From Marsupella aquatica (Eukaryota; Plantae; Marchantiophyta), in the NCBI GenBank assembly GCA_973895155.1, contig OZ316899.1:5645241-5709240 (forward strand): 64,000 nt of DNA, given 5' to 3'. Shown piece after piece: positions 389-55,412 of this stretch; within the stretch, counting starts at the first letter, position 1, and every line of letters starts with the position of its first letter. The notes beneath the pieces are model-generated. The model was not told where the DNA came from, did no database searches, and saw only the letters and a list, made by a program, of their open reading frames with translations. The position numbers and the translations under genes are program-made.

Positions 389-1162
389 CACTACTACATA
401 TTGGCCCCTTTTGCAAAGGTGTTCTTCGACATCGGGAAGGCCTTGTGATGTTAGCGCCTTCAGATATTTTGTGATGAAACACGCATCACAATATCCCATG
501 CTCTCAATGTCGCAAAATCATGTTGCAAAGCTAAATACATCGCACTTCATTTTGGATGTTATTGACTTCACAACAACTTGATATACTAGTTGTATCACAA
601 TGAGTCCGCGACCATTGCGACCGTATTCAGATACATTTTGGTTCATAATTTAGCGATTCTAATACGATCACGGGTGTTTTGTGAACCTATTATCTTCGAA
701 AAGTATTGTGAAGAACGTTGAGTCGCAAAGTACTGAATCCAGTTTGGTCGCAAAGTACTGAATCTAGTTTGGTCGCAAATTTGAGAACCAATTTGTATTA
801 GAAGGACCGATGGAATTTTATTCACAAGAGGTCCAAAAATTCCTTCCCGACTACTTCAAAAAATGTTTTGCAAAGAGAGTTGTTTGCAAAGTTTTCAGAA
901 TGGAAATGTTTGAGAGAATACTTTAGAAGATGGAGAATGCATGTGTTTAGGTTATAAGCTAGGGATTTCAAAAAGGTGGCATGCATATATGAGGATAACT
1001 TTTCTAGTGGCTAGGGTTGCATATATATATAGCGGTAAATTTCAAAGTCCAAGTGTTTGTAAGACAAAAGAAGAAAATAAATAGGTAAATATAAATTAAA
1101 CCATGATAGTTAATATAATCACAATTATACGCCCCACAACAAGTTTTACTACTAGTGATGCA

Positions 1163-4100
1163 TCAAACTTGGTCCTCATCCTCTCCTCTGTTTGACACAA
1201 TAATAACTTCAGGTTTTTCTGAGATAATGGAACGAGACCGTGGCACATACGGTATAACAACTGACCACTCCTCTGGGTCTGGTGGGTACGGAATATAGAA
1301 ACACTGCTCAAGGTGACTTGGGAATGTAAACGGTTCAGATGTTTGCCAATGAGATGGTTGAAAGCTAGTTGCTGATGTCTTCAGTCGAGTAAACCCACAA
1401 TCATCAAGAAGTACCGTGCAATTCTCACCAACCAAGTGAATTTTGAACCACTTACATTTGAAGACATACTCTTCAAATTTTGTATCCGCATCATAGGATA
1501 CAATCAAGATCTCCTCTATCTTCCCATAGTGAGGCACCACATCTCGGATGACATTGGTGTCATGGCGGCTACTTTGTGAATCCTGCATGAACTGCCCTTG
1601 AACTCCACAGTCAAAAGTTCTACCCCTCTTCTCATCAAGGTCAAAAATCCTGAAATGTCTCCCTTGTGTCCACATTGCTGTTCTGGTCTGAACAAGTCTC
1701 AAAGGGCCATGAACAATTGTTCGAACGTCATGAGTCATATCTGGAAAATGTGATACACTCTCACCTTGGGCCACCATAGCATCCAACTGAAGTACTTTCT
1801 CTCTCATATACTCAAGGAACTTTGGAAAAATCCTTGGGCAACGACTCTCCCTCTTTGCATCCTCGTAAAACTCTCTCCATTCTTCCATGACAGTGCTCTT
1901 ACTCAACATGAAAGTAGTCATCTATGTCAACTCAACTCTGGTCAGTAAGCGTGTTTTTTTGGCTCCTGTTAAACGATCCTCCTCCATTTCTCTCTCGTCC
2001 ATCCAATTGCGTGGACAACTAGGATCAATGGTAGCTAAGATGTTGCTGCAATAGAACATACTCTCAACTGCCAAGTATCCTGTTGCCATGCTCCCCTCCA
2101 CTCGTGCACGATTCCGTACATAAGCCTTTAACACAGCCATGTACCTTTCCAACCAATACATCCAACGACAATGCACTGGACCAGCAATGGCAACCTCCCT
2201 CACAAGATGAACAAGTAAATGCACTTGACAATCAAAGAAGGAAGGAGGGAGGGCCTTCTCTAACTTGCAAACTACCTCAGCTGCCAATACCTCCATACAT
2301 GGGATCTCTTCTTCATATATTTCCTTTGAGCATATCCATCTCAACAAAGTGCCCAATGACTAGAGGGCATCTTGCACTTCTTCACTGCCCAAGTCTATGA
2401 TTGCCACAGGAAGTATATGTTGTAGTAAACGGTGATAGTCATGTGTCTTTAGATACATTGGCCACTTATGACTGTCCTCCATCCCAAAAGCTTTCCAGAG
2501 ATTGGCACCATAGCCTGTAGGAAACCGCATCTGACCTATGCATTGTCGAAACTCTCTTCTTTCACCAACACTCAAAACCCAAGGAGCTGAAGGACGATGT
2601 TCCATCCCTGTTGATTCATCAACTGTTATCCATACATCTGGATGTCGTTCTAGATCTTGGCATGCCTCCCTAAAATTATGGTCCTTTTCTCCATAAAAAT
2701 GCTTGATCAAAGCCTTCCCAATGTTTCCCTCTATATGCATGGGGTCTAACAAGTGATGAATCTTCAACTCAGGCCAATACGGCAAAGTGGCTAGTATAGT
2801 CCACCGTGTCAACCCACTTCCATCAAATGCCACGGGGTCATCAGGGTTTGCCACCCTATCAGCTATGGATTTCCAATGTGCAAAGGATGTACGCTCAGGT
2901 ATGTCACGCTCATCACCATTGATCATGTCAAAGTCTGAAAATAGAAGGGGGTCAGACCTCATCTCATGTCCAAGTGGAAGAAACTTGGTATGCCCAAGGT
3001 AGATTATCTTGAGAAGCCATCTTGAGTACTTGGCCATATCTTCAAGGCTTGGACCACAAGTGGAGCATGCCTTATACCCTTGAGTTTGTAACCCTGAAAC
3101 AAACCCAAACCCTACAACAAACCCAAACCCAAACAACTTTCTCAATTAGAGTCAAAGGATTTAAAAAGTTCATGTACATACATAAATATGAGGGACTTCC
3201 TCTAAAACAAACTCTTTAATACATGAAAACCTTACCAGGATAGTCATGCATGGTCCACATATTGATTCCCTTTAATTTGAAGACACGCAATAATCCCCCT
3301 GTAGTTTTCCGACCATCATAGGCCCACACACCATCCCATAATTTTTGAAGTTCCCCAACCAATAGTGCCAAGTAGGTGTCCATGTTTTTTACCTTAGATG
3401 GACCTGGGATAATCAATGACAACAATAAGAAACCCTTTTTCATGGACAACCATGGTGGAAGGTTGTAATTCATAACAACCATCGGCCAAACTGATGTAGG
3501 GCGTCCTTTCCCACCAAGGGAATGGGGACTGACCCCATCTGATGCCAACCCCAACCTCACATGACGAGGGTCATTGGCAAACTCTGGCCATTGTGACTCC
3601 ACATGCTTGTGAGCAGGGGAGTCAACTGGCAACCGCATGACACCGGCCTTTGATCGATGTGTCTTATGCCATACCATCAATTCTGCCAAGTTAGAACATC
3701 GATACATGTGCAACAATCAAGGAATAATGGGAAACCAACGGACAGCTTTCCTAGGCACCTTTGAGGTCAACATGTTGGCCTCATATCGAGGCTCATGACA
3801 AATTGGACACTCAGTCCTGTTGGCATTGGTCTCATGATATAGGATGCAGTCATTCACACAAGCATGAATGATATGATATTCCATACCAATGGATGATAAA
3901 ACTCTCTTTGTCTCCTTCCAAGTTCCTGGCAATACATTGTCACTGGGTAACATGAGGTCATGACAAATTGCAAACAAATCCGATAGTAGGGCATTGCTTG
4001 CCTTGTGTTTTGCCTGAAGGTTCATCAATGCCAAGATGGCAGAGAGTCTATTCAAGCGAGCACCCCCATAAATAGGTGTTCTAGCATGTGCCTCCGCTTC

Positions 4101-5737
4101 TTCCCATTGTTGTTGACCTTCTGGTGTATGTTGAGGTCGGGGGTCATGTGCAGCATTTGGTGGGGGAGCTCCTTCATTGGGTGGTCCACGTCCTTCACCA
4201 TCAACGTCCACACCAAACCAATCTGTCATGAAGTCATCCATGGCTGTCTCCTGGTCCTGCATGACCTCATAATCTGTCCTAGGTGCCCCTTCATTCGACC
4301 TTCAATGTCATTGTCACTGGATGAGGAATCAAATGATGATGTTTCTCCGTCTCGTGGCATGCCCATTTCATCATATGTAGCTCTCAACCTCCTTGGCAAC
4401 ATATCTTGACTAGGTCGCACATTCTATGCACAACACAATAAAGCATTTGCAATCAAACTCCAAATAATAGTGAGACAAATATGTTATTAATAATATGAAA
4501 AGGACATGGGTAGCTTACAAAAATATGTTCACACGCAATGAATGAACATGTAATACATGAGTGTCCCTAAAATAACTAAGCCTAATCCCACTCATAATGA
4601 GTAAACAACTCCTCTCCAGCCTTAATGGTCCTTGTAGCCACAACCAGACAATGGTCATGATGATATCTCTGTCCATATGGTGCTGGAGGGGACCATCAAC
4701 AAAAACCCACTCACAATTTTGCCTACGCTTGGGCCAGGACCCCACAGTACTGTTTATGAAACCGGCTATATTCCCACTACGGATGGGATCTCCATCAATT
4801 ATACGTTGTTCACTATACTTTCTAGTGCAGCCATCAAAAGTATCCATGTCCAATGCATAAGTCTTCCACTCAGGGTGTTGTACAAGGATCATGTTCCAAT
4901 GTATCCTCTTGTAAATGGGTCCACCATATGGGAACAACGTTGGTTCATCTGGAGACCTCCCTTTTCCACCCATATCATCCACAATGATGTCCTCACAAGA
5001 AAAAACTTCATACCCATGTCTCTCCCCTAGTGTAGAACTTTTGACAACCCAACGCCTTCCCCAAACCTCTATCTCCTCACCATAGGTTATATCACATGGC
5101 AAACCAAGGCAATCAGGATTCCAATCCTTTATGATAGGCACACATTTCCCTGTGAACGTACAAGGTCCCCACCTACCATCAACCCTACAGGTATACTGAT
5201 CAACTTCCCCTCTCGGCTTCCTTTTAGATCATTTTTTCCCTCTTGTAACAATACCAACACCCTCAGCTGTCCCAACACTTCCTTGCCCTGTTGCAACTAG
5301 ACAAAAAGCTTGTGAAAGGGCCAAGCCTATAGCATCTAGAACTCCTTGTGAGGGAACATAGGGTGTTGGTGCCGTGGGTGTAGGCCTAGTGGATACCTAT
5401 ATGAAAAAATCCAACAAAGTAAATGTGAACAACTTCCCAAAACCTAAGTCATGCTAGGTAGATTTATAAAATTAGAAACAAACAAGGTAACTTTACAACT
5501 CACCATATGGGATGAAGAGGCTCTCAGTGTAAGACCTCGATGTTGTCCATATCTTACAATGTGGTCCGCACATACATATGACTTCTGGACAATCATCCCC
5601 ACACATTTTTTACAACCACAAAGTTGACGTGGCGGACCACTAGGTTGATGTACACTTGGTTCAGGCTCAGGAGGAGGAGGAATGTCTTCATCGGAGGAGG
5701 AGTCCGACGTGGTGGAAGTTGTAGAGGATGAAGACAT
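1163..5737 (-). pseudogene. CACTA-1 TnpD-type transposase (transposase-associated zinc exon, Transposase_21, DUF4218 and DUF4216-like regions)
   Basis: Predicted exons 5737-5504, 4423-3236 and 3111-1163. Motifs include CGCKKC..H..H, IHACVNDCILY, RHVRLGLASDG, YNLPPW, TMHDYPG, LDPMHIEGN, LKTHDYH and HCRWMYWLERYM. There are in-frame stops at ~3717, ~2360 and ~1922 and a frameshift near 4280. Confidence 0.9.
4582..5396 (-). pseudogene. SET/PR-like domain exon nested in CACTA-1 transposase intron 1
   Basis: HGYEVF..LFPYGG..IDGDPIRSGNIAGFINST..NCEW, then after a 1-nt frameshift at ~4690 CLVVATRTIKAGEELFTHYEWD*. AG acceptor at 5398-5397 and one in-frame TGA at 5231-5229. Clearly homologous to 49244-50062. 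Confidence 0.85.
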
Positions 5738-6169
5738 CTGGCAAATGCAACAAATGTTTGGAGTCTGGAGTTAGTAAAAAAATTCCCAAAACCATCCTTT
5801 CTAAACCCTAAGTACACTTTAAACTGAAGTGAAATGAATATTACCGTTTTTGAGACCCGGGCTCAGCAATGCCTATAGGTCTTCAAGCTCAAACTTGATG
5901 AACCCAATCTGGAAGTAGGAGGGAAAAATCTGCAAATATATAATACATTATAAGCCATGACTCATGATCAAGTAGAGAAAGGGATGATAGACTATAACCC
6001 TCAATAGTTCCAATATAAACCAAAAGGCCTTAAAACGAGTTGTACCTTTCAGATGCCCGGGCTCTCGCAATGCATATGCATTAGCCAAAACTTTGAAAAA
6101 GATGCGGAAGTGTCGTGCAAGTAGTCCTAGAGTGTTCCAACCCTTTATGTTAATGGAAAAATGAAAGCA

Positions 6170-6610
6170 TACCCTAAATGAAAACCTAACCCAAACCCCT
6201 ACCATGGACCCTAACCCTAAACCCTTAGTGAACCCTAACCCAAAGTAAACCCTCAATTAGAAAATAAACAAAACCTCTATTAAAACCTAACTCAAACCCC
6301 TACCCTAGACCCTAACACAGCTTCAAAGGTAAAACCTAAGTAATAGGAACCCCTACCTTAAACCCACACCCAAACTTCAAAGGTAAAACCTTACTAACCA
6401 AAACCCTTACCTTAAACCCTAACCCAAAGCATTTCCCATGAAACCCTAACCCAAAGCCCTCAATTAAATAGACCATGACCCTAAACTTCAATATAGTGCA
6501 AAAACCCTGAGTTAGAAGTCAAAGCCAACCCTTACATTAAAACCTAACCCCTACATTAAACCCCTACATTGGACAAAATAAAATTAAGTCCCTCAATTAA
6601 ACACAAAACA
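6170..6610 (+). repeat. Degenerate telomere-like (AAACCCTA/CCCTAA) array between the divergent CACTA-1 genes
   Basis: Many copies of aaccctaaccc, aaaccctaa and aaacctaa, e.g. 6208-6243 and 6414-6425. Confidence 0.7.
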
Positions 6611-7096
6611 CCTTAACTCAAAACCCAATTATATTTTCCTAACTTGGCAAATCACAAGAGTTGTGGGTTTAAGCAACTTACCCTTCTAAATCCGTTTAAT
6701 GTACTCAGGATCGTTTCCCACCCTAAACCAATATCACTTGCCTTGCAAATTAGTTCACAACTTAGAGAGAAATTTTGCGAACCTCTACGCTTCGCAACGG
6801 CTTGCAAAAACAGAGGCCGAGAGCAAATTTTGGTCCCTTCTGCAGGTTGCGATTGCCTTGCAATGACTAAACCTTCACAACAAGGTCGCAATTTGCAAAA
6901 TGGTTTGCGAAGCGCATAGGATGGGAGTTTCCCATGCGAATCTGATCGCAACACCCTTTTTTTTGAATGCCGTAAGTATCGGCGAGAGCTTGCGTTGAGC
7001 TCATTCCTATGTTTTGTCAAGAGAACGAGCGGAGAAGGCGAGAGGGTAGTGTAGCTGCACGCAAGGAGAAGAAAGAGACTTGAGAGGCGGAAGGCT

Positions 7097-9120
7097 ATGG
7101 CTGGTGGTGTGGGAAGTGGACAACATGGTGCTAGTGGTGCTAGTGGTAGTGGCAATGGGACAAATCAAGAGAAGGAGGGGAATGCATTCGCGGATTTAGT
7201 GGCCCAACATCTCAATGCTGCACAGTTGGGCAAAGTGAATTTGAATACTCCATCAGGGCTTGCCTCGTTGAGTGGCATTCTAGGGCAGATTTTGCAGACA
7301 GGAATTCTAGCAGGGCAGGCTACTAGAGGGGAGGAGGAAAGGGCCGCAGCTGAGGAGAAAGCTAGAGAGAAAAAAAGGAAGAGAGAGGAGAGGGATAAAT
7401 CGGGAGTTGCTTCTCCTCAAGCCCTTGAAAAAAAAAAAAAAGAGGAGAGGGATGCAATTCAAAAACAGAGGGATGAGCAACGTCAAAAAGAGGAAGCAAG
7501 GAAAAAGTTGCCATTCATTGCCTTGGACGCGAGTGGAACTCCAACAGAGCTAGCCTATGCAGGGGCTAAGAGCACAATCAAGCAGATCATCACAAGCAAT
7601 TTCTCACGAGGCATGCAGTGGGGAAAGGTTGAGAAGGCAGAACGAAAGAGGATGATCAATCAGATCAAGGATGCATTTTGCAACGGACCTGACATAGATG
7701 AGCAATGGCTGGGAGACAAGATTTCAAATTCTATGTCTCAAATGAGATACCATGACAGGATGAAGATCAGAGCCCACCTGAAAGACTTGAGATCATACAG
7801 GAATTTGCGTAGACCCCTCCATTTCACCGGGGACATTTGGAATGCATTTTACAAGATTGAGGTGCAGATCAAAGCAGCTGGTGAGTTAGATCAGTGGAAG
7901 GATGCATTGGCTCGAGCCTTGAAGGCAAAGGAGGCCGGGAAGCTCTCCCCTGACCACGACCTGAAGGGACTCGAACAGAAGGTGGTTGATCAAGAAGGAA
8001 GACCACCCAAGCGATTCACTGATGCAGCCAAGCGAGTAAAGGCCACCCCCAATCCAATCCACAGGTTGGGTCAAGGCGGGCTCCCCGGCCTCAAGGCTCA
8101 CTTCGTGAGTGCCTCCTCCCCTTCGTACTCTCTTTCCAACTTAGTTTCCCAGTGGGGCAATGCAAGTGAATGGAATCCCATGAATGGTGAAGCTCTCATG
8201 TGCTTTGCTTGTGTAGTGTTTTAGGTCATGTCTGACACTTAGAATTTTGGGCACCTTTTTAAAAACTCTCGGGAAAACAGTTTGCGAACCCGTTGCGATG
8301 CGTATCCCTTTGCAACCTGTTCGCAAACTCTATTATGGACTTTTGTTTTTCCCCAGTTGCGAACCCGTTGCGAAGGAACGCGCATCGCAACGGACATTGC
8401 AATGAGTTCGCAAAATATTGGCCTTCGCATGTTGTCAACCTATTAGCTTTGCAAAGTTTATGAATTCCCTTGGAATGAGGTTTGCTTTTGTGGGGTTTAA
8501 TTAGGGTGAGTTTTAGGTTATAAGCTAGGTTTTATTTTTTTGTGTTTAATTTTTGGTGGCATGCATGATAGTACCGGAAATACAAGAGAAAGATATCAGA
8601 GAAACATATTGAGACAACAATGGAGCACGGACGAAAGTACCTCTTTGCGATGGTAGATGCCGAGTTGGCTACTGTGAGTATCTTAGTTTTGACAATTTTT
8701 TAGTTGTCATGCAAACATTGTTGGGGACCCTTTAATTTTGCATAAACTCATTGAGTATATGGATGCAGGATTCGGTTGAGCCTGAGAGGTCGGGTGCTGA
8801 TGTGAGCAGTAGTGATGATGAGGATCAGCCCCTTACTAGTGGTGCTCAGGGGGGAGACAGTAGCCATGAGGGCGGTTCATCCCATCGTGGCAGTCGCACT
8901 AGTCTTGCGTCAGCAAGACAGGTCGATGATGAGGGGGAGCAGGAGGCAGGTGACAATGATGAGGATGAGCAGGAGGGGCAGGAGAGCAGGAGCAGGAGGA
9001 CGAGCAGGAGCACCCACGGGCCCTGCGCACCCGTCAGCAATAGGATATATGTTCCCGAAGGATAAGGGCAAGAAGCCGGCCAAGAAGCCGGTCAAGAGGG
9101 GTAGAAAGATCCCATTTTAG
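7097..9120 (+). CDS. CACTA-1 second gene, TnpA/Transposase_24-like, divergent from TnpD
   Basis: Predicted exons 7097-8104, 8572-8673 and 8769-~9065/9120 with phase-0 GT/AG sites. It has an HRLGQGG motif and is homologous to the 45903-48112 gene, including the first intron position. Confidence 0.7.
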
Positions 9121-9921
9121 TAAGTTTGAGGGACTAGCCATGTAAGAGCTTAGGATAGGAAGAGGTAGGATATGGTTAGTAGGGTCCACTTGGCATCACA
9201 TATGCCACCCTTCTTATGAATAGGGTTCCTTGAACTCCTACATTTTGTACATGCACCTATTTCTCATCTAATAAACACCAATTTTGCCTTACAATACATT
9301 GGGTCCATACCCAAGAGGAATACCTCGCAAAATGTTTATTGAAGCTTGTGCTTTCAAACAATTGCAAACCGGTTGAGAATTCCTAAACTTCAAAACTAAC
9401 CAGCTCATTTACCTTGCAACTTGTGAGCAACATTTCATCACACTTTTACATTCAATCTAGTTCACAACTATCCCATTCTTCTCTCTTTGCTAATTGCGAA
9501 CGCAATTGATTCGTTCTATTTGAAGCAAAACACTCCAGTATTTGCGATACAAATGAAACGGCAACTTATGAACCTAAAAGTATCTCAGATTCCGAGTCAA
9601 CTAATACCGCAAACCATCTACGAAGCAAAAGCGTTTGCAAATTTGAACAACCGCAACGGCGTTGGTGTGGTGCTTTGCGAACTGCATGCGATACGCAAAA
9701 CATCGCACAGGTACGGAAAATTGCAAGGCTATGTGGTTGGGTAATTGTGAAGTCGTTGCGATGGTGTTGCAATGGTCCAATTGTGAAGCATTTAGGTTTG
9801 CAAGTGGCAAAGGTGTTGCGATGCGCGTTTAATCGCAACACGTAGAATTCTTGATGTAAAGTTCTTTGTTAGTTGCGATATTTTTGGGTTTGCAAAAATG
9901 GATGATAGTGTAGTAGTGATC

Positions 9922-33477: not shown

Positions 33478-34030
33478 GGTCCATGATTATCCCTGGTCCT
33501 AAGCAAGTGAAGAAGATTGATGTATACTTGCAACCATCGATTGAGGAGCTAAAAGAGCTATAGCAAGGAGTGGATTGCTACGATGGCCAAGTGCATCCGG
33601 GGGCCTTATCTCGTGAGTTTAAGCTGAAGGCCCATTCTTTTGTGGACCATGCATGAACTTTCAGGTATGAATATGAATTTTGGGTACTTTCCTTTAAATT
33701 ATAATTACATATGGCTTTGCATGGTCTGGCTGTAACTATATACCCATTTTTAAATAGGATTTGTCCCTTAGGTTGGTTCTTAAAATGAACTTACTTTGAA
33801 ACATTTGTGGTGTTTTGTTACCATTCTTGTTCAAGGGTTTGGGTATGTTTCTGGCTTGCAAACTTTTGGATACCGAGCTTGCCCAACTTGTGGTCCAATT
33901 TTGAGGGAGTGGTTTGCCCAAATTCTACCGCCCTACGGAAGATAGTTTACATTGGTCACACAAAGTATCTTCCAGAAGAGCATGAATAGAGGTATGATCC
34001 ATTTTTGTACAACGTAGAGTTGGGCATGAC
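33478..34030 (+). pseudogene. Isolated fragment of a third CACTA TnpD transposase
   Basis: SMIIPGPKQVKKIDVYLQP..EELKEL..WTMH, an intron at the same position as in CACTA-1, then GYVSGLQT.GYRACPTCGP..KIVYIGHTKYLP. Confidence 0.8.
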
Positions 34031-44041: not shown

Positions 44042-45902
44042 TCTCGACAGTCTATTCGACTCCAAGTATAGGAGAAGGTCTATAGAAAGTGGAAGGTGAA
44101 CCCAGGGCGAAGCAGTTTTTGCAATTATGATTAGGCTAGGAATAGGTTAGTCAACTCAATGAGTGTTGATTAGATGCGCACTTTACAATTGTTTGTTGTA
44201 CTATGGCAACAACGGAGTAAAAGTTAATTTGTTATCATAACAATTCACACTTGGACCAAGGCAATTGCGTTCAATCAGGCGATGGCGGTTGACGATACTC
44301 AACCTTCTCACATCCAAGCTCACCCAGGAACCCCTGTAAAAATCCATTCAGTGGCACAGAGGCTCATTTGCTACCTTGCGCGTGGCCATTATTGTTGCCT
44401 GGTCCTTGTTAGTTTGCTCTTACGCTCCAATTCCACTCTTGATCGAACTCACTTTTATCAAAGAAAACCAAAGGAGAAGCGCGTAGTGTAGCAATATTTA
44501 GTCAGAGTGATCGGCAAAGGTGATTAGGAGTTCTTTGCAAGCGATTGTAGACCTGCGGGACTGCAACAATGAAGTGGCATGGGAGATGGACTCAATCAAT
44601 GGACTGAGAAGGTTAATTAGTATGACCCTTACCACTCTCAGATTCTGGATTGGTTGAAGAGGTAGGCGCCAAGCCCTTTGAGACTTATTGGTATTTTTCC
44701 CTAAGAAAGCTGCATACGGCAAAGGTACACAAATTGGTGGTTAAAGTAGCACAAATCAATTGCAAGAAGGTTGCACTCACCAAGGACGCAAACTACAATG
44801 AGGTGCGGGATTACATTACCAAGCTGTATATCAACAAAGAAGGCTTCCAGTCCATAGCTAAGATAATTTTAGTGGTGCCAACAAAGTATTTTAAGCTGAA
44901 GGGCTGTCGGCCGGAAGCTAACTCAAACGGAGTTTGAAGAGATCCCAGACTACATTGAGCAATACCTTGTGGCCAAGCAAAGGGAGGAAGAAATCAACTA
45001 GCAGTGGGAGGCAGTACAGAATCTCACCTTCCTCAGCAAAACCTCTAATGCATTCAATTGGGAATGGCAACTCTACCAAAACCGACCACCAATCGGCCTA
45101 TCATCTTGGCCAAGTGGGTGCCACCCAGTCAGGCCTAGGTATGCACGGTGAACAATGCAGAGTGTTCTTTGGACTTAGCTAGACAAGGTAGTCCATACCT
45201 AACGCAACGCTCAAGGAAACAGGCTAGGACAATGCAGGGTCCTGAACTTGGTCTTGGCTGAGGTCGACCCCGCCCCCAATAGTCACAACTACATTATCAG
45301 GACTTTTTACGTGTTACATGAAGACGTTAAGCCCGACGTCTCCTTGCTGCTAAAGAAAGGCGACATACTCAACGTGAATGAGGGCACGTTTTGTATGAAG
45401 TAACAAAGGTTACAGTTTACATCATCCAAAACGACGTTACATACGTCGGTCCATACTACGTTACATATTAACGTCGTAAATAAAGACGTTATTCTGGACG
45501 CAGATTGAACAAGGAAATCAGCTGATAACATTGTTTAAAATGACGTTAATGTCAGATTACGTAGTTTGTGACTTTGTTAATGATGAGTCTGTCCAGGACG
45601 TATGAGTAGTAAGTCGTGTGAGGCTTGGTAAAAATGGTGTTAACAAGAACGTTTGAAAATAGTACCAAGAATGGAGAGACGTGAATGGAGTGCCGTTTGT
45701 GGTAAACATTAATCTTGTATGGAACATCCTTCCAGGCTACCTTAGTTGGGTGGGCTTTAGGTTTAGGTTCATATACACACGGAATACACATAAAATAGAC
45801 ATATAAAGTCCGGAATGCCACTATAAATGGGTGGCGTCAAAAGTTTTTGCCAAAAATGTACAAAATGCAGGTGGATGTCCACCTAGTCATGCATGGTATA
45901 CC

Positions 45903-48112
45903 CTAATGCCGCTGAGAGCGGCTCCTATCACATCCAGACCTGCGAACAAAAATACGTGGCGGTGCCTCCGACTGTTTGCCTCGGGGCTGCAACTCGTACC
46001 GAAGTGGATCCTCGTCTGAACTACTGCTACCAAACACCAACTCCGCAGCTCCCTTGCCTCTACTCCTAGGGACTACATCTCTAGTGCCATTGTGTCCCCT
46101 AGTGGTATCCCTCTCGACACGGCTCCTCTTCCTCTCTCTATGTCTCTCCCTCCCTCCCCCTCTCTCTCTCCCTCTCTCTTCTCTCTCTCTCTCTCTCCGT
46201 CGTCTATGGCTGGTATGACCCCTATCAGTCTCCACTGGAGGGGAGAGGTTAGAAGATGACCGGCCCTGTGTACCTAAACTGCCCTCCTGCCCACAATCTA
46301 CTAAGGCCTCCTCCTGTGTATCAGGCTCCTCCCCTCCATGATCTGCCTCCTCATCTTCCGCAATGGGCCGTGCCACTAACCCCTCTGGAGGACTCCAATC
46401 CTCTTGGACATGACATAAGGGATCAGTTTACCTCCTGCAAATAGTGGATGCAAAACCTAGTATAGAAGGAACCTAACCTGACTATGTAACTTACCACTGG
46501 GTGGTCCTTGGGGATAGAGTCCAGCTTAGCCCATAGGGCCGCCGAGCCATAGCATTTTGAATAGAGCCGCTCCTGCTCATTTGGCTCGGCGTTGGCTCCA
46601 AACTTGCATTTCTGCAGGAAATTGGAGAACGTCGTCACCATCATCGTTAATTACAATGTACCTAACGATGTTTTCTAATTAACGTCGTCCAAGACAAGGT
46701 ATATAGTGGAACTGCCATATTAACAATGCAGAAATGACGTTAATTAAATGTAATGTTGCGAGAGACGACGTTAGGTAGGATGAACGTAGGGGGTTTAGAT
46801 GTAAAATTGAGAACTTGCGACGTTAGAGGAGAAAAACGACGTTAATTCAATGTTCTCACCACAGCGGCCGAAGCATGAACAAGCTGTGCTTTGAAGAGGG
46901 TGGGGGACTTACATAGGTTGCAAGGAAGCCTCGCCATCCTCCCTGGCCCAAGAAATTGGTCACACGCAGGCGGCCATTTGATTTGCGGGCTGCAGCAGCT
47001 TTGTCCCCCATGTGCACTCGCTTGCCTACTGGGGTGTCAGGTGCTGCTTCCAACTCAGCCACGATCAACTTGAAGTCGGCGTCGCTCATTCCTTCTGGTT
47101 TCAGGTATTGCTCTGTCCTTGGGCATCTCATTTTTTGAACCTTGTTTCTCCATCTAAACCTCCGATCTGCAAGGTAGCCTACGATCTTATGTCTGATGTG
47201 CCTGTAGTCTATTTCACGGCCGTTCCTAAACCCAGCTTGCACATCGTTCAGGAGGAGCTAAAACTTCTTTGCATTCTGCGTGAGATCCTTCCAAGTTGTC
47301 CAACCAGGACAGTGCTTGGCACAACACGTCTGCACTCGATTTGTGAGGGCCTCCTCATCCAGAACATCCGGCCTAGCATCAAACGCATCCAAGGTGATGG
47401 TTGGGAGTTTGTCTCGACTCACAGCAGTAGTTACAGGTCACACAGGAGAAGGTTGTCGCTTCTTGTGGGAGTGACATTCACGCTAAGGTGAGTACCTCTC
47501 TCTTCTGTCTGCCCTTGCATCTCCCTCTGTTCTTCTTCTTTTGTATGTACCTCTACTAATATGTGGATCTGCATCTCTATACTCCTTCCCTTTCCCCTTC
47601 CGTCTTCTCTCATCAAGGCTGCTATTGCTGTTGTGTGTTCTATCACGATGCCTTCTCCGCCCGTGAGAGTCCCGATCCTAATCAGGCTGGAATCTGTCAT
47701 GTGCTACCCTGACCACGCTCTTGATTGGGGTCCCACTAGGTGCGTGAGAATCAGGCTGCATTCCATTGAAGGCAGGATCGTCCCACCCATCATCTAGTAG
47801 GGACGGGAAGGAGTTGAGAGCATCGATCGAAGGCCCCCCATCCTCCCCCAAGAGCATTGCATTCTTAGTTTCCACATAATCATCAAGGGTAGGAGCATTG
47901 GCCCCTATATTTTCCAGGTACTCCAGAAACTGAGACTCCTTGCTTCCTTTTCCTCCCAAGAACTTCCAACTCTGGTTGAAAGCATGTATCAGCGAATGTG
48001 TCAATTGCATAGCTTTACGCACCTTTTCTAACTCCCCTGGATCATCCATAGCCACCAAGTCTGCATCAAAATCTCCACTGGAAGGGAGATAGCCTGGATG
48101 AGCCATAGTCAT
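45903..48112 (-). pseudogene. CACTA-2 second gene, TnpA/Transposase_24-like, divergent from TnpD
   Basis: LPTITLDA..W..GFRNGREID..KI..NFLGQGGWRGFLATY followed by gtaagt. Three exons as in 7097-9120, with several stops. Confidence 0.7.
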
Positions 48113-48527
48113 TCACTATTAAGATAGGAGGTCGAGAGGGGGAGAGGGGAAGTGTTGAATGTTGAATGTGAGTCACATTCGAGTCACTTCTCAATGTTTT
48201 GTTAAAGGAAAACAGTCGTAGCCCATGAACCTTGGAGACCCGGCGTTACCCTAATTTAACGTCATTAATCACAACGTTAACCAGGGGTGTAGGGTTTAGT
48301 GGCGACGTTACACATAATTACATCATACCAAACGACGTTAACTTATTAAGTACGTCGTACATTATGACGTAAACTAAATTCAGCAACCTCCCCACAACCT
48401 AAAAAATGACGTTAATTTTAGAAGAACGTCGTGTGGATGGACGTTATTTTGGTTAACGTAGCGGGATACGTTTATGCTTGGGGTTTAATATGTTGTGGGG
48501 GCCTTTGTAAATTTGATCACAGGGGAC

Positions 48528-51500
48528 ATGGCAACCTATGCATCGGACCATGATGGGGGTAGGCATCATCGGCACAGATACCATCATCATCATAGGGGGA
48601 CGTATGATGAGTCGGATAGGCAAAGGGATGACTCGTGTGATGATGACGATGAGCATGGCGGTAGTTCTCACCAACATAGACACCATCATCGGCATAGGGG
48701 GAGTTCAACTTCATTGGGCTATAGGAGCAATGACGAGCGGCGGAGGAGGAGGGATGACGAGGGAGGGAGGAGGAGGGATGACTCATCCTATGAGGACCAT
48801 GGTGGGGGTACTTACACCCGACACAGAGATGACCATCATCATAGGGGGAGGGACGACCTGTCGGACCAGGAGAGAGATTACTCACCAGACATGTATGATC
48901 GATCTAGGCGTCACCGATCCAGGCGTCGTCGACGTAGACATCATTCCAAGGGTAGGAGAGGCCGGAGCCCCCATCATGCTGATGGATTTGGAGAGGCCAT
49001 GGCTGCTCTTCAGGGGATTGGGCCAGTTCGCAAGATGCCTTGCCCTTGCAGACGATGCAAGGGTGTTGTCTTACACGAGAGGACCACTGTCCTTAGCCAT
49101 TTAGGGTTCCATGGTCGTTACACCCCCCCGACCCGAGAGGTAATACAATTTTGTTGGGTATTGCAATTATGATAACATCTCCTTCCTTGAATTGTTTTTT
49201 GATTATCATATTCTGAACTTGTTTTGGTGAAAATGTGGAACAGATTCCTGTTGTAGTGCGATCTTCGCCTGTGGACCGCTTGAGAGACATTGCATATCGT
49301 GCACTCGCACCACTCGTCCATCCATCCGATTTGCCAGCCACATTGAGGGAGATAGACCGTGTATTGAGGAGGAGGAGGAGAGTGTTTAGGATGCACCCTA
49401 TTGAGAGGGGAGTAGTGGTGACCACTAGACCCCGATCGATTGAGTCCCGTCCACCTAGGATTGTTCCGCCCCAATGCCCTTTTCTTGATGCATCGGTGTC
49501 CCGGGCACCAAGACAGTTGCGAGGGAGAGCCTTGGACATCTTAAAGGACTCCTTCCCAGCCCAGTTTGGACTCCCTATGGACCTCCCGCTACGGGAGCCT
49601 ATTATAGTTTGGGACCGCCCATGGGTCATCCTCCCCTCCACATTGGGGACTCATGTAGGACTTGGAGTATTTGCTCTTGTGGATATCGTGGTCCCTACCG
49701 GTTGTGCACCCGATGATTTGCCTCAGTTGTTTCCATTCTATGGGCCCAAGTATTCGGCGGCGAGATGGCACATCTTGTCCCGACAGTGCCCAACCTTTAG
49801 TCGATATGGCATGTCACTAAAGTTGGACCCTAGGTATGCTCAAATTGATGGTTACCCACCTCGCACGGGGAACTTGGCGGGTTACATCAACAACACTATT
49901 GGTTCTCGGCGTTCAGGGTTTAGGCCAAACGCTGAGTGGCACGAGTTCCATGACCAGAGTCACCCTCGTTTGCCTGTAGCATGCACGCATTACATCTTGA
50001 CACATGCTACCCGCACCATTAGAGCAGGGGAAGAGATTCTCGTAGATTATGATTGGCATTGATGTTTACATGTGTACATGACATATTCATTATGGGGTGA
50101 CCCTTGCATTTTTCATTATTGATGTTTCACTGTAAGCTTTATCACGGAAACCCTTTCTCTAATTGTGATTTGTCATTGCATATTGAAAACTCTAGGATGG
50201 TGTACATATTACTCCCACACCTCACCCATCAATGATGACTACATCAGCCCGTGCCTTTCACGTACGTGCCACCTTACATTTCTCAGACGAGGAGGATGCT
50301 GAGGGTCAGCCCCTTGACCATGATGAGATGGACGATGAGGATGAGGAGTACCATGATGCATATGATGGAGAGTTGGATGACGATGGAGAGTTGGATGATG
50401 ATGTTGACGATGAGGGAGATGAGGGAGATGACCCTATCCTTGAAGAAGATGCCTTTGCCCACCTTGTTGACATTCACTTTGGACCTCATGCACCTGACGC
50501 CGAGCACCCTATCATGGAAGTGGATCAAGAAGATTGGGATCACTTGGAGACTGAAGCCAGAACACCACTATTTGAGGGATCTCCATCCTCACGGAAAGCT
50601 TGTCCTAAAATTATCACAACTCTGGAATTTCATCTAGTGAATATTGGGCAGTCTAAGTTGTAGTGCCAGGCATGCCATCTAGCTACTTGGACTAACTGCA
50701 AAAAGTCTGGTGTTTGTGGTTTTGCAAATCCAGGTTGGGTGCAACTTTGTTGATGTTGAATTTGCAAGGAGTTTTCAATGGTTCGGATGTCCATACAGAT
50801 GCACTCTTCCAATTGTTCCACGGAAAACTCTTGCCCCAACCAAACACTCTCCCTGGATGTATGAGGGAGGCTAAGAAGTTGTTAGCCTCAATTGGATTGG
50901 CTTTAGAGACTATCCACATGTGCCCAGGTGGGTGCATCTTGTATAGAGGGGTGTACAAGGATCACACTCACTGCCCAGAGGAGCACTGTAGGCTTCCACG
51001 GTATCGACCAGACACCATTGGAGACAAGATTGCAGAAAAGGTAATGTTTTCCTCAACGCAATGTGAGAACAAGAAAGTCCAACTTTTAACGTTGCATTCT
51101 TTCAAACAACGTCGTACATGACTATGTAATTGATTACTTTACGTCATCCATCTCACTTTATGTCTTTCCACCTGACGTTTTTTTGTTTTTACGTCGTATG
51201 GGATGCAATAACTAACGGTGCATGGTACATCGTATGTAAGAAACGTCGTCCTCCACGATGTTAGTTTTAATAATACGTAGTGTGGAAGGACGTTTAGTGT
51301 GATTGTCGTCAAATTGACGACGTTACATTGGATCTGGCAGGTTTTTTGTTATTTCCCAATCACTCCCCGACTTCAGCATCTCTACCGACGAAAGCACTTA
51401 TCCACACTACAGACTTGGCATGTGGAGAACAAATCCCCACCAGGGATAATGCAATACCACCAAGATAGTCCAGCGTGGAAGCACATTGATGCCACTTGGC

Positions 51501-54186
51501 CAAATTTTGCCCAGGAGCCAAGAAATGTTCGTTTGGGGTTGGCAGTCGATGGAGTGAACCCATATAAACAACGACGGAAGCCTAAGTCCATCTGGCTTGT
51601 TCTTTTGATAAATCAAAACATCCCTCCATGGTTGGCAATGAAGAAGGGTCATGTGCTTCTATTAGCTATAATTCCTGGACCCAAGGCCTGTAAGAATCCT
51701 GATATCTGTTTGGCTCAAGCTTATGAAGAGCTACATAATCTATGGGAGGTTGGAGCAGTGACAACAGATGTCACTCGTGAAGCAGGCAATGGCAGGACCT
51801 TCAATACGAGGGTGATGATCACTCATTGCACCACAGATGGTCCAGGTAATTCATTGGGCAACCCAATGACTATTGTTTGTACAATGTCATGTACAATGCA
51901 AGTGTTGGGGTCATTTGTGGTCTGAACATGGTTCAATGAAATGGCAGGTATGGGGACAATATCTTGCCTGAAGGTGGCAGGTTTTTCAGCTTGCCCTTCA
52001 TGTGGCCCAGAGTTGCGTGGGAGGTACTCAAGACTACTGCACAAAACCACATATGAGGGCAGTAGGGTCCGGTTGGCAATGGATGACCACTTGCGCGACA
52101 AAACACAACACATTGGGCAGAGACTGAAGTGCGACCATGTCCTAAAGGCCCTTCAGCTGAAGGACAAATTCAAATGGCAGAGAAGGTGGAAGCAAAGTTA
52201 CTGAAACCCAAGGATTGTGGAGTAAACCAACGCTCAGCTATGTGGGACTTGCCTTATTGGAGGGTAAGTGATAGAAGTGCATGGTTCCTTTACAGAAAAT
52301 TAGACCAATAAAATGCTTAATTTAGAGATTGCAACTGATTCAATATGTTATTTCAATTTCCAGAGACTCCAGGTTCGATGGTTGTTGGACCCCATGCACA
52401 TTGAAGTGAATGTTGCTAAGAACTTGGTGAAGCACATTTATGGGACGAATGACACTCGTGGAGTCCGAGAGGATGCTGAGAGGGTTGGAGTAGTGAAGAG
52501 TTGTTGGATAACACGTACTGGGGAGAAATCTCCTGGTCCTTGGATTTTGCCAAGAGAGGTTTTGAAGGACATGAATGGGATGATAAGCAAGATGAAGTTC
52601 CCTAGCCATTACGGAGCTGGTTTTCGTGGGTGCACTACAAGGAATGATCACATACCCCCAATAGGGTTGAAGTCTCATGATTATCACAAGTTGATACAAC
52701 ATGTGCTACCAGCAGTCTTGCGTTGTTGTGATGATTCCCGGGAGCGTTGTTTACGCCGTCTGACTCTACATGAGATGTGCTCCATTTTTAGGTATGATAA
52801 CGTACCCTCTCTTCCATTGCTCTCTTGCAAGTTCTTGTTACCGCTGGAGGAGCCATGTAATTCAACAAGTATTTCAAACTCATTTTTCTATGGCCCTATG
52901 TGGATCTGATATACAAAATCTTTGATGGTTTTGAAGAGGAACATAGGTGGGTATGCGCTAAGGAGATAAAGGAGTCTGAGATTCCTTTGATGAGGGAGAG
53001 GTCAGCTCGCGTGATGTGCAATATGGAGAAGGTGTTTCCCCCATGCATATTTGACATGCAATTGCATTTACTATGTCACTTGGTGGATGAGGTCGCGATT
53101 GCTGGTCCTGTCCATGCACGTTGGATGTATTGGGTAGAGCGCTTCATGAAAGTGCTCAAGTCCATGGTGCATCAACCAGCTCGACCAGAGGGAAGTATGG
53201 CAACGGGGTATATCATGTCGGAGTGCATCTTTTATTCCGGAGGGATGATAGGGAGTTTGGACACAGAAGCTCCCACAGCTTGGGAAGAGGCACAAGATGA
53301 TGACAATGGTGGGTTGCGTTTGATGGGTGCATCAAAAAAGCATTCACTACATGACGACATACTTCGCCTACAGATCCACAATTATGTGTTGGGAAATCGC
53401 CCAGAGATGTCTCAGTGGAGGGAGTTGCATAGGTACATATATGCAACTCTGTATATATGTTAATCTAACAGTAGACGTTGTTCTACATTCTATGTGTGTA
53501 GAAGTTAGAGTGGGTTCAAGGAGCACTTCTGTGGATGAGGTCGCAATATTCTCATGGATTCATACATTTTTTGCAGTGCATTCTTGGAGCAGCAACCGAT
53601 AGTTGCATGACGGTATGCATTATTTCGCGTATGGGCATTGGAGCGTATGGATAGGCTCCTTGCAGAGCATGGACCCTTATCCATTCCCATTGATGTACAG
53701 AACATCATTAGGGGACCAGGGTTGTGGGCAACGACCCATACACACATGTATGAGTCAGGGCACCACTTTCGCACTTGGAGGACAGATCACATGAAGAAGA
53801 GTACATGTAACTCAGGAGTGTTCATGTTGACAGACCCAGGTGATGTTGAGATTCCCTATTGTGGCACTATATTGGATATTTTAGACGTTCACTTTGGGTC
53901 ATTTACTACTATTGTGTTAGAGGTGCTGTGGCACAAATCCATCATGTCACCTCCACATAGAGCCACCATGGTGAAAGATGAGTGTGGGTTCTATCGGGTA
54001 GACACGACTCGTGTAGCACCATCCGGGATTGAGGTTAGTGACACTATAGTATTTCCTAGCCAGGTGGATCAGTGTATTATGGTTCCGATGCACACTATGA
54101 GAGGATGGTCCATCGTCATTCCCATCTTCCTACGATGGAGGAAGGGTTTGATGGCTTCAGTAATTGTAGATGATATGGATCCATGA
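48528..54186 (+). pseudogene. CACTA-2 TnpD-type transposase, multi-exon
   Basis: Exon 1 at 48528-49139 (H/R/D-rich plus CPCRRC..H..H) and exon 2 from 50196. Motifs IHMCPGGCILY, RNVRLGLAVDG, NIPPW, LDPMHIEVN, LKSHDYH, HARWMYWVERFM and KDECGF. Confidence 0.9.
49244..50062 (+). CDS. Intact SET/PR-like domain exon nested in CACTA-2 transposase intron 1
   Basis: GLGVFA..LFPFYG..IDGYPPRTGNLAGYINNT..PNAEW..ATRTIRAGEEILVDYDWH* covers SET motifs I-IV. CAG acceptor at 49241-49243 in phase 0, with no internal stop. Confidence 0.9.
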   Translation: MPVVVRSSPVDRLRDIAYRALAPLVHPSDLPATLREIDRVLRRRRRVFRMHPIERGVVVTTRPRSIESRPPRIVPPQCPFLDASVSRAPRQLRGRALDILKDSFPAQFGLPMDLPLREPIIVWDRPWVILPSTLGTHVGLGVFALVDIVVPTGCAPDDLPQLFPFYGPKYSAARWHILSRQCPTFSRYGMSLKLDPRYAQIDGYPPRTGNLAGYINNTIGSRRSGFRPNAEWHEFHDQSHPRLPVACTHYILTHATRTIRAGEEILVDYDWH

Positions 54187-54701
54187 CCATAAATGTATTC
54201 AGTGCATGTATATATTCGTTATGGCCACCTTCATGTGGGTTTGTAGCATCTGTGGGTAACGTCGTTGTATGACTATTACGTTCGGTAGACCAATGTATCT
54301 TCAAACTACGTCGTACCAGCCATACGTTAATTCCAATTAACGTCGTTTTATTGAGCCTTCAACGACGTTAATTTAGCCACGACCCAGTTTACGTTACTCC
54401 ACACGACGTTGATTCTCCACTTAAAATGACGTTAAACTAACTTACGTCGTTTTAGGGTACGTATTAAACCAAAGACGTCGTGTATTGCAACGTTACTATA
54501 TCCGCGCGACGTTAATGACAGTGGTGACATTAATTGGCACATGCATTCAAAATGAAAAACATGAGGGAGTCTTTATTCAGATTCAGTATGATATAGAGAT
54601 ACAAAGGTCCTACAAAGCACATTGCATGTCCACCACAAAGCGACTATAACCTAGCCGAATCACTAAATTGCCTCATCCATTGACATCCAGATTGTTGCTA
54701 C

Positions 54702-55412
54702 TTAAGGCGTTCCTTCACCAGACCAGTAGTACTCCTCATCTGCCTTCCTTCTTTTGTAAGAATCACGCCTCTGCCTCTGGTTCCATTTCTTTCGGATGAC
54801 CTCTTCCCCAGCCTTTAGCCTTTCAGCCTCAACCTCAGCTGCACAACTTTCCTTGTAATCATACAAGACAATGTGAAGCTCAGTCGGAGACAACTCACAT
54901 TTGGGCAATGTAGGTGGATATGCCTCCCCATCATCTGGGTTGGGCGCCTCATCCAACATTTGATCATCACCTGGATGCAGCAGGAAGTCTCCTGGATCCA
55001 ACTATTTGTTGGCCAGAATTGAGCACTCTACCCAACAGATAGAAATGAAATGAACTGTCTCTGCAAAGTGCTCAATAAATCCATGGTAGTCACTGAAGTG
55101 CTCAACAATTCTTTCCACATATAGGCCAGCAAGTAGTCTGTTTTTGAGGTACACAACTTCTCAATAACGCCTCCCCGACAAAAGAACCCACGGATAGTCT
55201 TGTCCTCTTCACCAAGTGGAAGGAAGCAACAATGCACATCCTTGAAGAACTTGCACACCATGATTGAATACTGAGTCTATCCCACACTGCAATTTCTCTG
55301 TACTCAGGAAGAGTGCATTCTCCAAAAATCACAAACGCAAGCCTACTTTGGTCTCAGCACTCTTAAACCAAAATCCTCCCGTAGAAAACCCAAGCTATAC
55401 TCGAGTCAACAT
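54702..55412 (-). pseudogene. Additional frameshifted ORF of unknown function in CACTA-2, convergent with TnpD
   Basis: Adjacent coding-like pieces at 55102-55332, 55028-55261 and 54702-55001 lie between two motif clusters. No domain recognised. Confidence 0.4.

Follow-up and report, generated by a model that had tools for sequence, protein, structure and literature searches.

A SET exon in liverwort CACTA transposons and its probable alternative splicing from a first exon shared with the transposase

En/Spm and the Arabidopsis elements ENSPM3/7 provide the closest described precedent for a transposon that encodes two proteins in a single unit by alternative splicing (PMC2613891; PMC13547354), in agreement with the premise of the sequence-only reading that En/Spm makes several proteins in this way. 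A second precedent concerns the enzyme rather than the splicing: SET genes are described from HarbingerS and from Phytophthora MuDR elements (Kojima & Jurka 2014, Repbase Reports, cited in PMC12730594), and other transposon-borne modifiers of epigenetic marks include VANC in VANDAL/MuDR elements and TET/JBP in fungal Kyakuja-Dileera-Zisupton, Plavaka and EnSpm elements (PMC12730594). Transposons that, like these carriers of VANC and TET/JBP, bring enzymes against their own silencing marks are rare and informative. A SET domain and a transposase also meet in SETMAR, a domesticated primate host gene that captured a dead mariner transposon and now encodes a SET-mariner fusion. Full-text literature searches turned up no earlier account of a SET exon, either for CACTA elements or for the transposons of bryophytes.

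Two complete elements are present in the window, that is, the whole 64-kb stretch of DNA analysed here, and both belong to the CACTA, or En/Spm, superfamily. As in En/Spm, Tam1 and ENSPM3/7, they possess CACTA-type TIRs, a 3-bp TSD and a TNP2/TnpD-type transposase, together with subterminal repeats. Specifically, the CACTA-1 TIR CACTACTACA.. occurs at 389 and 9918 (11 of 14 positions match) with the TSD ATC/ATC, while CACTA-2 has the ends CACAACTAC.. / ..CTAGTTGTG and the TSD AGT/AGT, its terminal repeat CACAACTA.. being present at 45284 and 55806. The hexamer AACGTC/GACGTT occurs 34 times in CACTA-2 (background 0.37 per kb) and TTGCGA/TCGCAA 28 times in CACTA-1; each is clustered at the element ends and is also found internally. 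A Pfam search identified Transposase_21 (123.7 bits) and DUF4218 (102.9 bits) in CACTA-2, both downstream of the SET exon, and DUF4216 (31.6 bits) in CACTA-1. The open reading frames in the 5′ regions of the two elements had no Pfam match, and neither element showed a recognisable TnpA-like gene. The conserved protein blocks are 32–47% identical between CACTA-1 and CACTA-2 (36% for SET), and the two elements are old relatives rather than recent copies. Their features are as follows, with a caret marking each exon edge.

389 to 9918, minus strand: CACTA-1, a complete but decayed element (TIR, TSD, TNP2 blocks, DUF4216)
5504 to 5737, minus strand: CACTA-1 exon 1, 78 codons and no stop, Ser/acid-rich (MSSSS..) followed by the motif CxCx2Cx13H (CGCKKC..H); donor ATG^GTGAGT, phase 0
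5397 to 5503, minus strand: CACTA-1 intron between exon 1 and SET, 107 nt
4582 to 5396, minus strand: CACTA-1 SET exon, broken; acceptor ATATAG^GTA, phase 0
1163 to 4423, minus strand: CACTA-1 transposase exons, TNP2 type, with exon 2 starting at 4423; acceptor GCATAG^AAT, phase 0, its TAG being a stop
45284 to 55806, plus strand: CACTA-2, a complete element (termini and TSD)
48528 to 49139, plus strand: CACTA-2 exon 1, ATG at 48528, 204 codons, His/Arg/Asp-rich followed by CPCRRCKG..H; donor GAG^GTAATA, phase 0
49140 to 49243, plus strand: CACTA-2 intron between exon 1 and SET, 104 nt, with stops in all frames
49244 to 50062, plus strand: CACTA-2 SET exon, intact, 272 codons plus TGA; acceptor AACAG^ATT; first Met at codon 50
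50063 to 50195, plus strand: CACTA-2 spacer from the SET stop to exon 2, 133 nt; tail of transposase intron 1, or 3′UTR
50196 to 50660, plus strand: CACTA-2 transposase exon 2, acidic, with the motif DPILEEDAFAHL; acceptor CTCTAG^GAT, followed by 155 open codons
50696 to 54186, plus strand: remaining CACTA-2 transposase exons (Transposase_21, DUF4218)

Exon-by-exon translation and splice-site reading bore out all the coordinates previously given for both elements, as well as the phase-0 donor of exon 1 and the phase-0 AG acceptors for SET and for the transposase. The layout common to the two elements thus consists of a zinc-motif exon 1, a phase-0 GT, an intron of 104–107 nt and the SET exon, followed by a spacer of 133–158 nt and a phase-0 AG at which transposase exon 2 opens; in CACTA-2, the transposase intron 1 that contains the SET exon measures 1056 nt. 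From this arrangement, we consider it probable that exon 1 is shared, being spliced alternatively to SET or to transposase exon 2 within one transcription unit. The single unit would begin with a coding first exon, specifying a basic or Ser/acid-rich head and the Transpos_assoc-like zinc motif CxCx2Cx13H, and the SET exon, with its own stop, would sit in the first intron of the transposase gene. Splicing from the phase-0 donor of exon 1 to the SET acceptor would yield a ZnF-SET protein of about 350–480 aa, while splicing from the same donor to the exon-2 acceptor, skipping SET, would yield a canonical ZnF-Transposase_21-DUF4218-DUF4216 transposase. The choice between the products could be made by acceptor choice, by exon skipping, or by polyadenylation after 50062; past the SET stop, neither a clear poly(A) signal nor a conserved donor was recognised in the sequence.

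As in En/Spm, a single promoter would serve for two proteins by way of intron-1 splicing, the second product here being the SET protein. As for TnpA and TnpD, there would be one 5′ promoter and one first exon, and the handling of intron 1 would decide which protein is made (PMC2613891; PMC13547354). The nesting differs, insofar as the transposase ORF of En/Spm lies within tnpA intron 1, whereas here the SET exon lies within transposase intron 1. In addition, the shared exon 1 is here coding and would give its zinc motif to both products, and the second protein would be a SET enzyme rather than a TnpA-like DNA binder. HarbingerS and the Phytophthora MuDR elements, compared by description only, resemble the present elements in being autonomous DNA transposons with their own SET lysine-methyltransferase-like protein, but they differ in transposon superfamily and in host kingdom, and the citing paper states no shared transposase exon (PMC12730594). 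With the carriers of VANC and TET/JBP they share an accessory gene whose predicted targets are the chromatin or DNA marks controlling the transposon (PMC12730594), although the enzyme class is here SET.

The relatives of the SET exon provide an opportunity to compare this layout among copies. A word search with the SET exon recovered 16 homologous proteins of 170–290 aa (43–63% identity) with a common end point, and an HMM search of 1.84 billion representatives recovered 129 proteins with E ≤ 1e-3, 32 of them with E ≤ 1e-30. Among the relatives traced to their source, none had another domain architecture or the name of a known cellular SET family, suggesting a narrow, divergent SET clade. Two liverworts, Riccia sorocarpa and Calypogeia fissa, are the sources identified by name; the other relatives come from Logan, ENA and JGI contigs, and a metagenome scan contributed a single extra locus (L007). 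Eleven fetched loci (L001–L011) were therefore compared together with CACTA-1 (C1) and CACTA-2 (C2), thirteen loci in all. The full layout recurs in L001/L002/L007, L003, L004, L005, L009 (from Riccia sorocarpa) and L011, the last of which has an exon 1 of 78 codons, like that of CACTA-1, with 42% identity over 45 alignable residues. Both elements appear to belong to an old TNP2-type CACTA family found in liverworts, in which a SET enzyme has long been conserved within mobile elements, and this in both classes of liverworts, Marchantiopsida and Jungermanniopsida.

At a single locus the splice layout is no more than would be expected by chance; phase-0 GTs are common, and so are phase-0 AGs close to where an ORF begins. 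The thirteen loci, however, come from at least seven subfamilies that have diverged, and in them the donor and each of the two acceptors occur at homologous places. This recurrence, taken with the steps in conservation at exon edges described below, appears to be more than chance. The comparison of splice sites among copies that the sequence-only reading had proposed thus came out in its favour, except that in the decayed copy L006 (Calypogeia fissa) the SET acceptor is out of phase, although donor and exon-2 acceptor are retained, and that L008 and L010 are without the small intron. For exon 1, the donor was compared in C1, C2, L001/L007, L003, L004, L005, L006, L009 and L011: it is always in phase 0 and 9–19 residues past the invariant His of CxCx2Cx13H, beyond which the frame meets stops. 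The donors found are ATG^GTGAGT, GAG^GTAATA, GAG^GTATGA, CAG^GTTAGC, CAG^GTATAT, GAG^GTGAGA, GAG^GTATGT, ACG^GTAAGT and CAG^GTACAA, and the motif CxCx2Cx13H is invariant across the compared exon-1 peptides. Canonical TNP2 transposases have Transpos_assoc at their N-terminus in the Pfam architecture. Eight of nine exon-1 peptides match one and the same segment of Transpos_assoc (PF13963; approximately positions 31–62 of 74), all at 13.8–21.2 bits against a cut-off of 27.7; the scores for exon 1 of CACTA-2 (20.1 bits) and CACTA-1 (17.5 bits) are likewise below that cut-off, and in both elements the match is confined to exon 1.

A ZnF-SET protein made from exon 1 and the SET exon is well supported by several features of the loci. 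Outside L006, the first AG within the open SET frame serves as its acceptor, a phase-0 YAG located 0–39 nt past the last in-frame stop (in CACTA-1, the acceptor TAG is itself that stop), and the intron that separates it from exon 1 is 101–147 nt long and stop-rich at the loci that possess it. Between L001 and L002, this intron is only 49% identical, but its last 30 nt are 90% identical, as expected of an acceptor, and the SET exon is 82% identical. A stand-alone SET protein, with its start inside or at the head of the SET exon and exon 1 left to the transposase, would be consistent with the separate ORFs of 260–290 aa given by prokaryote-style gene callers, and in the L001/L002/L007 subfamily, where the SET exon opens with ATG (CAG^ATG GGT), an independent start is therefore possible. 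This opening is limited to that subfamily, and the SET exon has no conserved Met across loci: the intact exon of L005 (286 codons) has its first ATG at codon 257, the first ATG of CACTA-2 (codon 50) is past two conserved, confidently modelled helices, and the 'M' called in L011 is a GTG directly behind a TAG acceptor. Two lineages argue further against a stand-alone SET protein, in that zinc motif and SET are encoded without interruption by a single ORF, both at L010 in the Riccia chromosome assembly (7368–8837, corresponding to residues 12–501 of P0031) and at L008 (433–1704; 423 codons). Taking both sides together, we regard a stand-alone SET protein as very improbable.

The intron-less lineages nevertheless retain a phase-0 GT near the homologous place (GGA^GTACCA in L008, GAG^GTACAG in L010), and L008 has a phase-0 acceptor ahead of exon 2 (CTCAG^GAA). 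The possibility that L008 is a spliced cDNA was rejected, as its SET stop and exon 2 are still separated by the unspliced spacer; it is best read as genomic DNA of a lineage without the small intron. The joining of exon 1 to SET is also found in a Riccia gene model, KAL3688689.1 (P0038), with the junction ACG^GTAAGT..TTCCAG^TGT. As the Riccia annotation combines models from ONT cDNA and PASA with those of BRAKER, GeneMark and AUGUSTUS (PMC11735767), P0038 offers support for the junction but not RNA proof. Word searches with the SET exon, P0038 and the zinc-motif region of P0067 recovered no spliced-junction contig of Logan or TSA type, and evidence from transcripts, cDNA contigs or proteomics was found for neither of the two exon-1 junctions.

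The identity of the SET domain was evaluated against both sequence and structure collections. The CACTA-2 SET exon matches Pfam SET (PF00856) at 24.5 bits (cut-off 22.4), and the same profile is matched by 30 of 36 family members, with a best E-value of 1.3e-8. The SET motifs GxG, YxG, (Y)INS..PNAEW and GEExxxxY are kept, the invariant or nearly invariant positions being GxG (G139/G141), Y-G167-P, N216, N229-A-E-W232 and G262-E264-Y269, and the family shares with LegAS4 the replacement of the His in NHS, reading YINS/YINN instead. When the 36-sequence profile was compared with the PDB, only SET enzymes were matched: the top matches were of the active LegAS4/RomA type and covered the whole core (E 0.007–0.008), and were followed by EZH, MLL, SET8 and ATXR5/6. 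A PDB sequence search with a smaller first alignment gave nothing useful, while an Atlas search with P0038 gave only SET clusters, with LegAS4 in the Atlas structure list. Legionella LegAS4/RomA (PDB 5czy, 8sr6) is therefore the best solved-structure match and shares YINxS...NAE(F/W)VE in place of NHS; it differs in its ankyrin repeats, which are absent here, and at an E-value of 0.007–0.008 the match is one of likeness and no evidence of descent. The AlphaFold model of SET has a mean pLDDT of 59.8, with core blocks mostly at 62–92, which corresponds to moderate confidence. The dN/dS ratio of SET was 0.37 at dS 0.33 for L001 versus L002 and 0.13 for C2 versus L004, deeper pairs being saturated, and the domain is under purifying selection. 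By inference, SET would be a working methyltransferase whose substrate is chromatin at the element.

The transposase product depends on exon 2, whose frame opens exactly at a phase-0 YAG; the place of this YAG is homologous wherever a locus extends to exon 2, and in C1, C2, L006 and L011 the TAG of the acceptor is an in-frame stop. Exon 2 is coding directly from the acceptor and has no conserved Met. The transposase requires, further upstream, a coding exon whose end is in phase 0. Two separate genes, in which the upstream promoter yields ZnF-SET only and the transposase is expressed from a promoter in the spacer and an internal Met, with no exon shared, would fit the Met-Met found 12 codons into exon 2 of C2, L004 and L006. 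However, these are the sole Met candidates, and the residues ahead of them (T-P-x-P-H-x-S) stay the same while their codons change synonymously at third positions; at this place Val-Leu is encoded in L001, L002 and L005, with no Met in the next ~30 codons. The spacer that would have to hold the promoter is just 133–189 nt in C1, C2, L001 and L005, and between L001 and L002 it is 33% identical, compared to 87–93% for the first 60 nt of exon 2. Together with the values for the intron and the SET exon, these identities place steps in conservation at the predicted exon edges.

Three further points favour two separate genes: the Riccia annotation has the transposase as its own model downstream of ZnF-SET, a word search of the protein database found no protein joining the zinc motif straight to transposase exon 2, and some Arabidopsis EN/SPM families comprise two tandem genes (PMC13547354). 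A transposase expressed in this manner would, on the other hand, be without the N-terminal Transpos_assoc segment, which is found in exon 1 alone. On balance, two separate genes seem unlikely, though by no means negligibly so. The junction of exon 1 to exon 2 is the most economical reading, because a stop closes the SET exon and only exon 1 is Transpos_assoc-like. The earlier claim that one unit yields two isoforms therefore fared unevenly, in that the ZnF-SET product gains strong comparative support from the conserved splice sites, the lack of a Met, the fused ORFs and P0038, and the ZnF-transposase product is reached by exclusion. Its further suggestions, that the shared domain could direct both proteins to the element and that splicing or polyadenylation could switch between chromatin modification and transposition, are speculative.

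A third possibility is a SETMAR-like ZnF-SET-transposase fusion, in which a donor just before the SET stop would join SET to exon 2. Six Riccia models (P0090, P0109, P0147, P0149, P0040 and P0067) do join SET, or part of it, to the transposase, but their junctions differ and are non-homologous, several drop part of the SET core or the catalytic Tyr, and the source annotation is the same mixture of cDNA-based and ab initio models. A phase-0 GT near the SET end is always present; it encodes the Val of the (I/L)LVxY motif, a conserved SET residue, and therefore carries no extra signal. In every lineage, moreover, the SET frame stops within 2–15 codons of the domain end. Such a fusion is thus quite improbable. 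The present elements resemble SETMAR in having SET and a DDE transposase in one transcription unit, joined by splicing; unlike in SETMAR, the SET exon resides in mobile elements with intact TIRs and TSDs, has its own stop, and is most likely unfused.

Returning to the shared exon 1, we infer that both of its junctions would be used in vivo. The arrangement is real and conserved, and we regard it as a new variant with respect both to the alternative splicing of CACTA elements and to the chromatin enzymes that transposons carry. The present analysis contributes a side-by-side comparison of two elements that are each complete and have diverged deeply, the ZnF-SET lineages lacking the small intron, two tests of exon 2 (by synonymous changes and by identity steps), and the lesion map of CACTA-1. 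If alternative splicing from exon 1 is true, the classic En/Spm scheme would be extended to a different second product, and with SET wired into the transposase gene, both proteins would inherit one N-terminal zinc motif. More tentatively, and with rather low probability, ZnF-SET may be an accessory factor that replaces TnpA: the shared zinc motif would find the element or transpososome, a histone mark on the element's own copies would counter or steer silencing, and splicing from the exon-1 donor would set the ratio of 'mark' to 'move', the donor inside the single ORF of L008 and L010 being either used or ignored. If SET is active, this would be a plant transposon that writes protein, probably histone, methylation. 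In bryophytes, many transposons carry H3K27me3 and H3K9 methylation, and an active SET enzyme would therefore provide a simple, testable genetic switch.

The two elements differ in their present state. The lesions of CACTA-1 were mapped against L011, an intact-looking member of the same subfamily (55% identity between the transposases). The SET exon of CACTA-1 contains an in-frame premature TGA at 5231–5229 and a frameshift near 4690–4650, such that its terminal stop at 4584–4582 belongs to the shifted frame, and the transposase has a frame change in exon 2 near 4290–4268 and an in-frame stop at 3719–3717. CACTA-1 is a dead copy, a relic. Hence, the SET exon with its own stop that was originally described for both elements holds for CACTA-2, with its TGA, whereas in CACTA-1 the premature TGA and the frameshift precede the terminal stop; likewise, because CACTA-1 is dead, 'in both elements' is true of the layout alone and not of working copies. 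Intactness across exon 1, SET and exon 2 together is found in CACTA-2 alone, and CACTA-2 is the sole element within the window that could still express ZnF-SET.

Motifs of the subterminal type also lie inside these elements. In CACTA-2, AACGTC/GACGTT is clustered internally as well as at the element ends, with clusters directly 5′ of the exon-1 ATG, within a transposase intron, and directly 3′ of the transposase.

AACGTC/GACGTT clusters of CACTA-2 (window coordinates)
45323-45542, cluster
46628-46838, cluster
48258-48440, cluster
51108-51319, cluster
54258-54508, cluster
55452-55692, cluster

The gene is further bracketed by an inverted repeat (48425-48453 and 54382-54410), and the spacer between the CACTA-2 SET exon and exon 2 holds none of the AACGTC/GACGTT motifs. 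The corresponding spacer of the Riccia sorocarpa locus L009 (CM100797.1, 9255-9577), which runs from the SET stop to transposase exon 2, contains approximately eight TCGGAA(A/T) motifs. L008, a locus with zinc motif and SET in one ORF, has a 5′ region (1-430) filled with this motif as well. As putative subterminal-type binding motifs directly 3′ of the SET exon, those of L009 could bear on isoform choice.

The first exons themselves vary. That of CACTA-2 opens with a 125-codon low-complexity head rich in His, Arg and Asp (48528-48905), whose Arg runs resemble a nuclear localisation signal, whereas first exons in the other subfamilies span 78-132 codons and carry Ser/acid-rich heads in its place. 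In the Calypogeia fissa copy L006 (9303-9700), a tandem repeat of ~30 nt enlarges the intron 3′ of the zinc-motif exon; with an out-of-phase acceptor for SET, this copy is decayed.

In CACTA-1, an antisense reading frame lies within the 4.2-kb 5′ region, flanked by two clusters of the CACTA-1 motif TTGCGA/TCGCAA:

7097-8224, + strand, ATG ORF of 375 aa, Lys/Glu/Arg-rich and coiled-coil-like

The ORF has no match in Pfam and no counterpart in CACTA-2. It could represent a second CACTA-1 gene, or else a sequence that was captured or is nested there.

P0104 (Ginkgo biloba Gb_21150; E = 7e-8) and P0054/P0166 (Calypogeia fissa; 4e-24) belong to this SET clade as distant members, and their N-terminal regions are different and Cys-rich. 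These proteins may be host genes or come from other families of elements, and could be informative about where the captured SET originated. Outside both elements, a short TNP2-transposase-like fragment (33480-33983, + strand) matches Riccia CACTA proteins in two frames by tblastn.
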